Of a stretch of 64,000 nt of DNA, positions 33,106-38,402 are shown piece after piece (the stretch's first letter is position 1; each line of letters opens with the position of its first letter). A program made the translations under genes and the position numbers. Origin of the DNA: Guillardia theta CCMP2712 (Eukaryota; Protista; Cryptophyta). Location of the stretch: positions 62,902 through 126,901 of the forward strand of contig NW_005434575.1 of assembly GCF_000315625.1 (NCBI RefSeq), written 5' to 3'. Under the pieces are notes generated by a model that ran no database searches, was not told the DNA's origin, and saw nothing but the letters and a program-made list of their open reading frames with translations.

Positions 33106-34225
33106 TCAACCATGTGATAACTGCACTCCATCACTCAATGCCTTCCGCTTCAGAGCTACTCCATGGTGCCAACGGCCTATGAGGGGGGAGGCTGCACCTG
33201 AGCCCACTGGTTCAACCTTTCCAACTCCCTCTGAACAAACGATCAGAACGAGAGATTTGAGTTGAGATTCAAAACAGCGAGAGATCACCTGTCTCGTCTC
33301 ATTATCAACCTTGCTCGCAGCGTTTCCTGACCCGAATCCCATCTTCGCCATCAACTTCCGCATAGTGGTCTTGAGCTCTCGAGGCACCTGGCACAGGTCG
33401 AACATGAGCGAAGATGACAAGTAGAACGTCAGTACCTGAGCAACAAAGCGAGGAGTGAAGTTGTAGAACAGAGAAACGAATCCCCACCACTCCAGAATCA
33501 GCCCGAGCTGCGTGTTGAAACTAGAATAGAAACTCAACTTCGCTGCTTCTGTTGGATAAACAAGAGCCGTCAGTGCATGCAGACCTCTCTCACAGAAGCA
33601 CACAGCAACACGTGTGTAAGATTGAAGCAGAAGGTGAGGAAGAGTGGAGCGGTATCAGAGGACCTGAACACACCATACCTGCATGAGTTATGATGAGGAG
33701 CATCCCGAAGACCATGATCAGAGTTCCATTCATTCTCATCTTGAACTTCGATCGACCATGGCGGTCAAACTGTCGGGAATTCATCAGAACCAGACCCAGT
33801 CCACATATCGTCGCTATGTTCGTGATCATCAACCCTGCTCCGCATCCCAAACGCTGTATTTTTCCAGTTTTAGGCATGAGCCGCGCATTGCAAGATGCCA
33901 TGGCCTTTGGCAGGTACAAAAGACTTAAAAAGATCAGCGCCAATCCCATATTTTTCGGTCCCAGTTTCTTTGCCAGCCCTCCTCCTCCTCCTCGAATGCG
34001 CTGAACAGCATCGACTTCCACGAGTTCGTTCATGTATGGCGCTTGCACCTGGTTCCATGCGCCAGAAGACCCCGCGTACTTCTGAAGGCTTTGCTGAGGA
34101 TGGCGAAGATGCATGGTTGAGTGCTGAACAAGACCCATGGAAGAAGAAGGGAGGAGCATGAAGATGGTTCCGACGCAGGTCAGAGCATAGATGTTCCTGC
34201 TCACCAAGCGCGGAGGCCAGGCCAT
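33106..34225 (-). CDS. Got1-like small membrane (vesicle transport) protein with N-terminal presequence
   Basis: Hydrophobic helices; GTLIMVFGMLLII and LGLILEWWGFVSLFYNF resemble Got1 (G..LE.YGF..LF..F.P); signal-like start and RIRGG. Confidence 0.55.
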
Positions 34226-34581
34226 GGCAGCGAGCTGTCTTAAAATTGTAATAAACGTGTCCGGGAGCATGGCAGACCGGATTCAATGTTCTCTACAAGG
34301 AACATTTGAGGTCCCTGTACGGAACTGTGCGATGAAGCCCTTGATCCCTAGCTAGAGTGCGGTATGCAGAGCGTGAAGGAAACGTAATGAAGGAAGGAGG
34401 AGAAGATGATAAGAGCGAGAAGATGAGATGGAGAAGGAGAGGATGAAGATGAAAGCCGGCCTCAAGGATCACGCAGCGATGGGTAGCGAAGAGAAGACCG
34501 GATTTCGGGTTGGTTGGACTCATTCGACCTATCAAATCTGTCTTGACACATGATCGGGATCCTTGATTCGACATCCAAGAA

Positions 34582-35939
34582 ATGATGGGGATCGTTGATC
34601 GTGTGTGGATTCTATCGCTTGTGATTGTGACTATGAGCGGATGTTCTTCCAACCAAAGGATGTTCTTCCAACCCGGAAACGACATCACAGGTTCACATGC
34701 TCTTATGGGACATCTTGGTATCGTAAGGAATGTGGTGTGTGGTCATTTACGCCTCCGGGGTGGCAAACGCAAGAAGAGAGTAGAAAAGGCGAAGGAGCAA
34801 GACAAGATCATCAAGTCCATTGCAAAGCCAAAGAAGAAAAAAACACATTACAAAGCTGGGACGAAAGACTATGTTCCGTTGGACATTCCTTATTTGTACG
34901 TGATTGGTGGAAGATCGACGCAATTTGAGCTTTCGATTGTACAAAGGTATGATGTCACAACTAAGGATTGGACTCCATCATGCAAACTTGAAAGCCCCCG
35001 TGCATATTCAGCTGCTGCCAGACATGGCAACAAAATCTACCTGATTGGAGGAATTAGCAACAACCAGCCACTTAATTCCGTACGGAGTTTTTCACCTTAT
35101 TCTGACGATGAGACCTGGAAAGTTGAAAAAATGATGCCATTTGCCAGAAGAAACTTCGCTTCTGCTGTGCATGATAATCAAATCTTTATCTTTGGTGGAA
35201 CGGGTATGCCGAAAGCCATGGTCAACACGGAGTCAACGGAAGTTTGCTTGAAAAGTGTGCAAAGCTTCCTACCTGATTTCCAGTTCTGGCAGAACCATAC
35301 TGACATGCCCATAGAAAAGCAGTTCTGTGCGGCAGTCAGCTTTGGAGATAGAATCTACGTCATGGGAGGCTATTCTAACGTTGAAGGGGACGATCTCGAT
35401 ACAGAACTGGATTCCATGCACAGCTACGATCCTGTTCTACGTGCGTGGAAGGCAGAGCCGCCAATGCCAACGCCAAGAGCAAACTTTCAGGTCTAAGAGG
35501 CCAGGTCATGATCATAATGTTTGACTGTGAGATTCTTTCAAATCAGGCTGTTGCGATCGCGGGCAGGATTTACGCGATTGGTGGCATGTCAGGAGGGTTA
35601 CAAAAGGCAGACGTGGAGAGCTTCGATCCGACTACTGTAAGCTGAACATGTCTTCTTCGCCTGTCAGTAACGATGTGTTTCAGAGGGAGTGGAGAATTGA
35701 GCCTCCTCTCAATCAGAAACGCAGTGCCTTCGCAGCTGAATGCTTCAACGGATATATCTATGTCGCAGGTGAGATCAGTTCCTTCAGCAGAAGGATGATT
35801 TGATTGCAACGTGGATAGGAGGAATCGTCGGAAGCTCCGAAATCAGCATGGTGGAATGCTTCGACCCCTATTCCCAAAGGTGGACGGTAGATTCATCCCT
35901 TCCGACTCGACGATGGGCCCTGTCCATGGTTGCAATCTG
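34582..35939 (+). CDS. Kelch-repeat protein with signal peptide, LRLRGG and a basic patch
   Basis: Repeated LYVIGG, IYLIGG, IFIFGG, IYVMGG, IYAIGG with Y..D...W spacing; short 3' introns. Confidence 0.88.
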
Positions 35940-36161
35940 AGCTGTCGCATCCGGTTACAGTGGAATCCTGTCATGATTCTTTATTTTATATGGAAGCAAC
36001 CAACAGATACTTGGCAAAAGAGCATGACAACTGCGCAAACGAAATAATAAGATCCTTTGAGAGGTGATCATGGAGGATGCATTATCAACTCCTGAGTCAG
36101 GAACGTAGCTCAACGCGCGTTCAAATCCTGTACCTGAGGCTAATTTCTACACATCATTACA

Positions 36162-37128
36162 TTATTCCTGATTCACTTCTATTGCATTGCGCTCATTATT
36201 GGATGTTTCAGCGAACAAGGGAGCTGGTTTGATCTCAGAAAACTCCTGCATTTGGTTTCCCAACTTCTCACGGTATGATGGAAAAGCCGATGCATCGCAT
36301 GGCCAAATGTTCGGACACATTTGGCGCTGCAGTTCTGTACCCTCAGTATAGTCCAGATATTCAAAGACGCAAGTCTTGCCAGTAAGATGTGAATACACTT
36401 GCTTGTATACCTCCAGCTTGCTCTCTGTATCTGGTTTGGAATTGATCTCCAACATGAAGTGATGGGTTGGTTTCTCAATTCCAACATCGTGTATCTCATA
36501 CTTTGCAGAAACACGATGAGGCCAGACAAGATCTTCAAGATAGCCTTCATGAACAGCTTGCTGCGATAAAATGCCGTCAGTGACGAAAAACAGACAAACT
36601 CGTTCAGCAACTCACCACTGTCCGACTTCTAGGGCGCTTCTGCTTTTGCAACCTCTTTCCAGGCTTCTCCCTGGGAAGGATTCTACGATGCTGAAGCAAG
36701 AATATGTGACAATTGAACTCAGCTTCCAAGATCTGGCAAAGAGAGATCTGGAAATTCCGGTAGTCCTTCATTTCGATGTTCGGGATGGTCAGTAACAGGG
36801 CTCTGTCGGAGGTCTCTTTAATCGGAACCTCCTTGACTGACATCACATGCAGATACTTGATCATTTTGAAGTTGTCATCGTTCTGGTACAAATCAAAGAG
36901 CTTCTGCACAACGAGAGTTTCAACATCTGTGGGTGGATTCTTCTTGCGCGATTTGAAGTCTCTGAGGAGGATATCCGAGGCTTGCTTATTCTGACAGAAA
37001 GGTCTTCGAATCTGATCCATTCCTCCCCGAAGCCTCATATGAAGATGAGGTGAAGAGGGAGCATGGCCCCCAGACGTACACGGAAAGACCGCAAGAAGTA
37101 GCGTTGCGACTGTCAAAAATGCCTTCAT
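36162..37128 (-). CDS. rps7: Divergent 40S ribosomal protein eS7 with N-terminal signal peptide
   Basis: HRRILPRE...[25 protein letters not shown]...VYKQVYSHLTGKTCVFEY matches eS7 (QRRILPK...[23 protein letters not shown]...VYKKLTGKDVNFEF); intron 36561-36615. Confidence 0.88.
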
Positions 37129-38402
37129 GGCAAACTTATGAAAGTGTAATCCCCTACAAACGCTCCGCGCCGCGAATTTATCGGGGGCCAAAGAGATTTA
37201 CAGGAGGACTAGGTCTTTGACTGCTCTCTGATCACCCTGAATAGCAGATTGAGCTTCTGCTCTGTACTAGCGCGCCGTCACCTCAGAGGCCACCCGGAGT
37301 TGCAATGCAAGACAACTTGGATTTGAATGACTCAACTCACAGCAGATGTTCGCAGAAAAGTAACAGTCTTGTTCCAGTATATCTGCTCTCTTCTCCTCCT
37401 CCTCGGCTAATGCTTCGCAGTGCTCATGGCTGGCTAGTCTGGTCCTTCTCTCGATCCGGCATTCCCTCCCCTCGTTTCGCACACCTTATTCGCACGACCC
37501 GATTCCAACTGTCTCCCTCAATTTTGAAATTTGAAGCAAGCTGTTCGAAATTGTGATTTTTCTTTTCAGCGCCCGCAGAGCTCCACAGCTCCACCTCCCG
37601 CATGCAAGCTTGAAGAGTTCCGCCCCCACCAATCCTCTGAGGTGAACCCGGAATGAGGGGCGCGTCTGCAATAGTAAGAGGTTTTGTCCTTCTATATTTG
37701 ATATTAATTATTCTGAGGCGAACTTGAAAGTGATGTAGTACCCAACCTAGGACCCTACCCCTACCCCCTAAGTTGTTCATTTGCCCCCAACTCTTTGCAT
37801 CACGGGCTTTGGCGCCAAATGGCCAATACGATGGGACATGGACAAAACAGTTCGCTCCTCCTCCCCTCTCCTCTCGCCTCGCCTCTTCTTGCCTTCTCTT
37901 TTCGACTTCCGCCCTCTTGCTCTCCTCTCCTCTGATCCACACCTCTCCTCCACTATGCACCCTCTCATCCACTCCTCTACCCTCTCGATCTGGTTGTCTT
38001 CAACCTCTCGTTTGTCTCCCTTCCCTCCCTCACATCCATCTTCTCTCCCACTTTACTTATGTCTTGGCTCGTCTTCTCTTCTTTCGACGTCATATATCCC
38101 CCACATTTCCGCGTCGTCTCATAATCGTAGCTCAGTTCTGTGTATGTGCATGATCGAAGGGTGATGGATCCATTCTTCATTCTGTGGAGATCAAAGGCTG
38201 CACAATGGTGTGTCTCAAAGGAATGTAGGCTCAAATGGAAACCTAGTGATCCTGCAGGAAAGAAGAAGAGATAAAGATTCATGCAAGACGATGTAGATAA
38301 ATATGATCAGAGCAGGGCACACAACTCGTGAACTATTGCGGTTCTTTGTTATTGTTTAACATCTGTGAAACTTGCAGGGCCGGGTAGCTTTATCCGAGCA
38401 AC

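Follow-up and report, generated by a model that had tools for sequence, protein, structure and literature searches.

A nuclear eS7 gene of Guillardia theta with an LRGG-ended leader, very probably serving the periplastidal ribosomes

Cryptophytes have eukaryotic periplastidal 80S ribosomes, and these are built partly of nucleus-encoded proteins (PMC3879969, PMC6559170). According to Table S2 of Maier et al. (PMC3879969), three cryptophyte nucleomorphs have no rpS7, those of G. theta, Hemiselmis andersenii and Cryptomonas paramecium. A preliminary description of the locus reported here took such ribosomes as established and asked whether the nucleomorph lacks rps7; the literature bears out the ribosomes for cryptophytes and the absence of the gene for these three species. 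The chlorarachniophyte Bigelowiella natans likewise has an eS7 for periplastidal 80S ribosomes, but its rps7 is nucleomorph-encoded (Table S2, PMC3879969); in that alga it has remained within the relict nucleus, whereas the cryptophyte gene lies in the host nucleus and carries a putative import leader.

The closest described case in cryptophytes is histone H2A, which has been immunolocalised to the nucleomorph and bears a signal peptide together with a transit-peptide-like leader that has no aromatic residue at +1, as is the rule for periplastid-targeted proteins (PMC5443833). No cryptophyte nucleomorph has an H2A gene, and a copy in the nucleus makes up for it (PMC5443833). A different likeness is found in ubiquitin-fused eS31 (S27A) and eL40, where a ribosomal protein is also preceded by ...RLRGG and the fusion is cleaved after GG.

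The window analysed here is a stretch of 64,000 nucleotides from the G. theta assembly (87.1 Mb, 669 contigs). Positions 36162-37128 of the window hold, on the minus strand, a putative periplastid-type eS7 gene with two exons that is spliced and expressed. The ATG is at 37128 and the stop codon at 36164-36162, with 36162 as its last base. Transcript evidence comes from spliced contigs of two transcriptome-like runs (X1, X2), which reach 37442 and 37460, more than 300 nt beyond the leader ATG. The 5' end and the strand of the transcript are those of the contigs alone, the raw-read RNA run (X23) contributing just 9 reads. The exons were used by reference, with P0001 and P0435 from the database taking the place of the spliced product. 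The precursor has 303 residues in five parts (1-20, 21-36, 37-58, 59-239 and 240-303). The features are as follows; omega values are for the comparison with L008, a spliced transcript of a close relative.

37129..37460, minus strand: 5' UTR of about 315-330 nt, bounded by the ends of the X1 and X2 contigs, 64% identical to the 5' UTR of L008
37407..37427, minus strand: upstream reading frame of 6 codons in another frame, the sole upstream ATG in a scan of 37129-37460
37128-36616, minus strand: exon 1, 171 codons, beginning MKAFLTVATLLLAVFPCTSG
37069..37128, minus strand: predicted signal peptide, codons 1-20, with n-region MK, a 12-residue h-region and T/G at -3/-1
37021..37068, minus strand: transit-peptide-like spacer, codons 21-36, Gly first and RLRGG last (37021-37035)
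36955..37020, minus strand: codons 37-58, the 22 residues by which the mature protein is lengthened N-terminally in this family; the public model begins here
36616..36954, minus strand: first part of the S7e domain, codons 59-171 (PF01251 positions 3-115, E 1.4e-18; omega 0.05)
36561..36615, minus strand: intron of 55 nt, GT..AG, phase 0; the joint 36560->36616 is present in the X1 and X2 contigs, and the spliced transcript L008 is continuous there
36560-36162, minus strand: exon 2, 132 codons and the stop
36357..36560, minus strand: second part of the S7e domain, codons 172-239 (PF01251 positions 117-182, E 1.4e-9; omega 0.13)
36162..36356, minus strand: conserved C-terminal extension, codons 240-303, and the stop; absent from canonical eS7 (omega 0.09)

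The ATG and the last base of the stop codon agree exactly with the coordinates first given for the gene. The h-region FLTVATLLLAVF has a mean Kyte-Doolittle hydropathy of 2.6 over 12 residues and is followed by PCTSG. On this heuristic reading the predicted cut has small residues at both positions, T at -3 and G at -1, and the residue after it is Gly21, which is non-aromatic. The signal peptide and the absence of Phe after the cleavage site that the preliminary description had reported are therefore both upheld by a heuristic cut site, and the signal peptide is conserved in the orthologues. The spacer consists of 16 Ser/Pro/His-rich residues with MRLRGG at residues 31-36. It is short by transit-peptide-like standards, which counts against a periplastid reading. 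A ubiquitin domain was not found by Pfam, and 16 residues separate the signal peptide from GG.

The Ribosomal_S7e scores are 67.7 bits for exon 1 and 38.4 bits for exon 2. Since both are above the curated cut-off of 33.5 and the matches cover profile positions 3-115 and 117-182, the exons together encode one complete eS7 domain. Solved eS7 chains match residues 29-206 of P0001 (E 1e-26). When the protein is aligned with eS7 of red algae and fungi, its basic core RRILP...KQKRPRSRT falls in invariant columns. As first described, it has diverged strongly, with about 35% identity to any canonical eS7, and the C-terminal extension noted at the same time runs for 64 residues past the domain under purifying selection (omega 0.09). 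The AlphaFold model has a pLDDT of about 90 in the core and about 50, a low confidence, in the C-terminal extension.

The canonical eS7 of G. theta is on another scaffold (S7e_1, P0131, G000:C85). It has 194 residues, five coding exons and no leader, so the gene in the window, publicly named S7e_2, is not the sole eS7, and the second, canonical RPS7 that the preliminary description had raised does exist. The two proteins share the Pfam family, the domain length and the core RRILPRE..QKQKRP.SRT. However, they are only about 35% identical, S7e_1 is without N- and C-terminal extensions as well as without a leader, and the introns lie at different positions, the nearest being five codons off.

The gene belongs to a cryptophyte family. 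The close relative L008 is a spliced transcript of 1376 nt with 88% protein identity, the same in-frame architecture and LRLRGG at the corresponding position. Its protein (P0435) has a conserved signal peptide and a 303-residue ORF that is complete according to MMETSP. L008 has two short uORFs in its 5' UTR. When 1.84 billion representatives were searched exhaustively with a profile, about nine further 50%-identity clusters scored 147-303 bits. Canonical eS7 scored 104 bits or less in the same search, leaving a clear gap to the S7e_2 family. Members include Baffinella frigidus (Cryptophyta sp. CCMP2293) KAJ1482886.1, and the others are from MMETSP and environmental assemblies. A scan of metagenome contigs with Guillardia-specific peptide patterns gave no match. 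In all nine full-length members that were read, a hydrophobic leader is followed by a spacer, which varies in length and sequence, and then by xLRGG, with LCLRGG, LGLRGG and IALRGG among the variants. The +1 residue of the orthologues, read at the likely cut sites, is T, A, S or G and never aromatic. The orthologues also have two motifs in common, RRKPF..D[IV][IL]LRD in the N-extension and ..QRxPNxxPCDxxGF .. E[IV]xPAPL on the C-terminal side of the domain.

S7e_2 is very probably the eS7 subunit of the periplastidal 80S ribosomes of G. theta, which work in the relict red-algal cytoplasm. This reading, already put forward in the preliminary description, gains from a leader that is kept across genera, a nucleomorph without rpS7 and a separate canonical eS7. 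It is well supported because of the expression of the gene, the conservation of the leader across genera, the complementarity with the nucleomorph and the leader type of the candidate nucleomorph H2A. Since cryptophyte nucleomorphs are without rpS7, the S7e_2 gene is the evident supplier, and with it a missing component of the smallest eukaryotic translation system known would be accounted for. The signal peptide would direct the precursor to the ER lumen that surrounds the plastid and would be cleaved off behind residue 20. With non-aromatic Gly at its +1 position, the leader now exposed would then drive passage of the second membrane (SELMA) with no onward entry to the stroma. A protease, probably one specific for ubiquitin tails, would take off the leader at RLRGG (residue 36) or beyond it, and the mature S7e_2 of 267 residues would enter the nucleomorph. 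There it would be assembled into small subunits on nucleomorph-encoded 18S rRNA, and the conserved N- and C-terminal extensions are probably adapted to the divergent periplastid ribosome. These extensions are a possible marker or antibody target for periplastid ribosomes.

The protein could also be in the periplastid or nucleomorph in a non-ribosomal role, for example in 18S processing only or as a regulator, with periplastid ribosomes that either have no eS7 or use the host copy. The strong divergence and the two family-specific extensions would fit such a role, as would the fact that eS7 has assembly-stage roles. However, the whole S7e domain, including the core RRILP..KQKRPxSRT, is under strong purifying selection and the host copy is without a leader. 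The same two-copy pattern is also seen for other ribosomal proteins that the nucleomorph is missing, and a non-ribosomal role is therefore improbable. Among the six nucleomorph-missing ribosomal proteins that were searched, five (eS7, uS13, eL22, eL38 and eL42) have at least two nuclear loci. For the sixth, eL37, a search for a second locus found none beyond its 1 nuclear locus. The counts for the others and for two nucleomorph-encoded controls are as follows.

uS13 (rpS18): missing from the nucleomorph; 2 nuclear loci; the leader of the second copy ends LRVRGG directly before the mature homology
eL22: missing from the nucleomorph; 3 nuclear loci; the leader of one copy ends LRLRGG directly before the mature homology
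eL38: missing from the nucleomorph; 2 nuclear loci; the leader of the second copy ends LRLRGG directly before the mature homology
eL42: missing from the nucleomorph; 2 nuclear loci
eS6 (control): nucleomorph-encoded; 1 nuclear locus
eL15 (control): nucleomorph-encoded; 1 nuclear locus

Together with the second uS13, eL22 and eL38, S7e_2 suggests that the host nucleus systematically complements the ribosomal gene set of the nucleomorph.

The individual second copies differ in detail. The second uS13 (L017, G000:C269:25002-28115, minus strand) has a signal peptide and a leader ending LRVRGG, which is followed by ..IRIFNTNIDG.., the typical N-terminus of a eukaryotic uS13. A divergent second eL22 (L010, G000:C16:304773-307958, minus strand) has a signal peptide and a leader ending LLRLRGG, and a third eL22-like locus is on C13 (L012). 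In the second eL38 (L019, G000:C15:805841-808909, plus strand) the leader ends PLRLRGG directly before the eL38-like ..IYEIK.., and an exon further upstream probably encodes the signal peptide. The second eL42 (L44e; L023, G000:C143:137168-140248, minus strand) is divergent and has at least two exons.

A signal peptide by itself means entry into the secretory pathway, and S7e_2 might accordingly be a secreted or ER-resident protein derived from eS7 and unrelated to the endosymbiont. This is very improbable, however, given the type of leader. The succession of signal peptide, spacer and LRGG is the same as on the presumed nucleomorph H2A locus and is also found on second copies of EF-1alpha, uS13 and eL22. 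Moreover, the family is found in named cryptophytes and environmental sequences, and it is not obvious what an rRNA-binding ribosomal protein that is still intact would do in the ER. The H2A locus in question (L031/L049, G000:C4, about 101180-102306, plus strand) encodes both a signal peptide and a leader with SLRLRGG at its end in an upstream exon. This locus probably corresponds to the H2A that immunofluorescence placed in the nucleomorph (PMC5443833), because such a leader was seen at only one of the six H2A loci. S7e_2 resembles nucleomorph H2A in being a nuclear copy of a gene that the nucleomorph is missing and in having a bipartite leader without an aromatic +1 residue, and the leader of the candidate H2A locus likewise ends LRLRGG. 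The two differ in that the location of H2A comes from immunolocalisation and that of eS7 is predicted from sequence. An EF-1alpha-like locus (L047, G000:C3:1063784-1066800, minus strand) has LRLRGG abutting the mature start GKEK..VVIGHVDSGKST.

The position of the translation start also bears on the periplastidal reading. The public entry, 'small subunit ribosomal protein S7e_2, cytoplasmic type [Guillardia theta CCMP2712]' (P0001, 267 aa), begins at the internal Met directly after RLRGG; the leader of 36 residues is thus missing from the public annotation. The leader ATG has a good start context, and since the only other ATG in the 5' region is that of the 6-codon uORF, it is the first ATG of a long reading frame. 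Leader-coding DNA is 82% identical to that of L008 compared with 64% for the 5' UTR. Omega for the same pair is about 0.5 in the leader, 0.05-0.13 in the S7e domain and 0.09 in the C-terminal extension, and the 22-codon N-extension has zero non-synonymous changes (omega 0). Met after GG is absent in seven of the nine full-length relatives and is not found outside the Guillardia pair; an internal-Met start cannot therefore be a conserved mode of expression. That S7e_2 is a cytosolic eS7 paralogue started at the internal Met, with the hydrophobic upstream frame as untranslated leader sequence, agrees with the P0001 model and with the good context of that Met (G at -3, G at +4), but is hardly credible given an in-frame upstream ATG within the mRNA, in good context and with just the 6-codon uORF ahead of it, a leader in frame and better conserved than the UTR, seven full-length orthologues that retain the leader without a Met after GG, and the MMETSP rating of the 303-aa ORF as complete. 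The internal start that the preliminary description had itself raised is thus unlikely, with the upstream ATG in the mRNA and a leader in 9/9 full-length relatives. Because the internal Met is in good context, some cytosolic product may still be made in G. theta itself. The public name and the localisation ('cytoplasmic type') are probably wrong; the gene model behind them, in which the leader is hidden and the protein cytoplasmic, is corrected by the present reading.

The origin of the periplastid-type eS7 is less clear-cut than its likely destination. A first tree, in which two Guillardia-type sequences alone represented the family, has a stem of about 5.8 changes/site, a branch too long to place, and AU tests on this tree give p 0.30 for the red position and p 0.52 for the host position, rejecting neither. 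Once seven members are included, the family forms a monophyletic group (100/100) whose point of attachment lies inside the red-algal grade, and a 99/97 branch sets the family and all red algae apart from 29 others, including S7e_1. This split recurs (100/96) in a tree limited to the two slowest members, to which Cyanidioschyzon is nearest. In the exhaustive profile search, too, it is the Cyanidioschyzon cluster that scores best among the canonical ones. AU tests of a sister relation to the host copy give p 0.32 and 0.21, neither of which rejects it, and the counts at columns separating red from non-red eS7 are 0 versus 2 and 2 versus 1, which point neither way. No intron position is common to S7e_2 and S7e_1; a recent host duplication therefore gains no support from the introns, nor is it disproved by them. 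Descent from the red-algal endosymbiont is favoured over a host duplicate, but the AU tests leave the host sister position standing. The preliminary description had allowed for a host-supplied replacement or a transferred gene; the trees favour the red-algal affinity of the latter, but the AU tests do not reject a host duplicate.

Nucleus-encoded periplastid ribosomal proteins are a known kind. S7e_2 appears to be an added, mis-annotated member of it and not a new principle. The LRGG-ended leader is a more novel element of S7e_2 than its kind. A strict LRLRGG DNA pattern has 353 matches in the genome compared with 255 for the reversed control. Among the first 30 matches, 17 are 25-110 residues past a Met and a hydrophobic stretch in the same open frame, a context found at 3.1% of random positions (p about 1e-18). 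The EF-1alpha-like locus is one of these 17. In S7e_2 itself MRLRGG lies at the junction of leader and mature protein, and LRLRGG does so in its nearest orthologue, L008.

The position of the motif suggests that the leader of S7e_2 is cleaved after GG. Compared with ubiquitin-fused eS31 and eL40, S7e_2 imitates no more than the final five or six ubiquitin residues and has no ubiquitin fold, it has a signal peptide upstream, and its GG cleavage is a putative one. A 2025 study of SELMA found cryptophytes to be without ptDUP and suggested an alternative enzyme (PMC12412216). It is possible, although somewhat doubtful, that S7e_2 and perhaps 200 other G. theta leaders are cut exactly after LRGG by a periplastidal ubiquitin-specific protease, as a maturation step of import without ptDUP, and that the extensions of S7e_2 make contacts specific to the periplastid ribosome. 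Among the UCH (Peptidase_C12) loci of the genome none with an LRGG-type leader was found, which, like the reported lack of ptDUP, counts against the periplastidal reading, and a literature search found no paper that combines LRGG with Guillardia, nucleomorph or periplastid. S7e_2 is a clean ribosomal-protein case of an LRGG-ended leader that is conserved across cryptophyte genera, and it makes the removal of the leader testable.

The neighbours of the eS7 gene in the window also have hydrophobic N-termini. A Kelch-repeat gene at 34582-35940 on the plus strand (ATG 34582) is the convergent neighbour and has four coding exons; its introns at 35487-35542, 35637-35683 and 35767-35816 are confirmed by transcript contigs. 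Its N-terminus is hydrophobic and its leader ends ..GHLRLRGG, with RLRGG at 34750-34764. The transcript contigs of the Kelch and eS7 genes merge, which indicates that the 3' ends overlap or abut. An ORF at 33590-34270 on the minus strand (ATG 34270) is membrane-protein-like; its N-terminus is hydrophobic, and some 95 residues from its start lies ..VQRIRGGGGG, where ..QRIRGG may be a variant of the LRGG leader end. This ORF is transcribed divergently from the Kelch gene.
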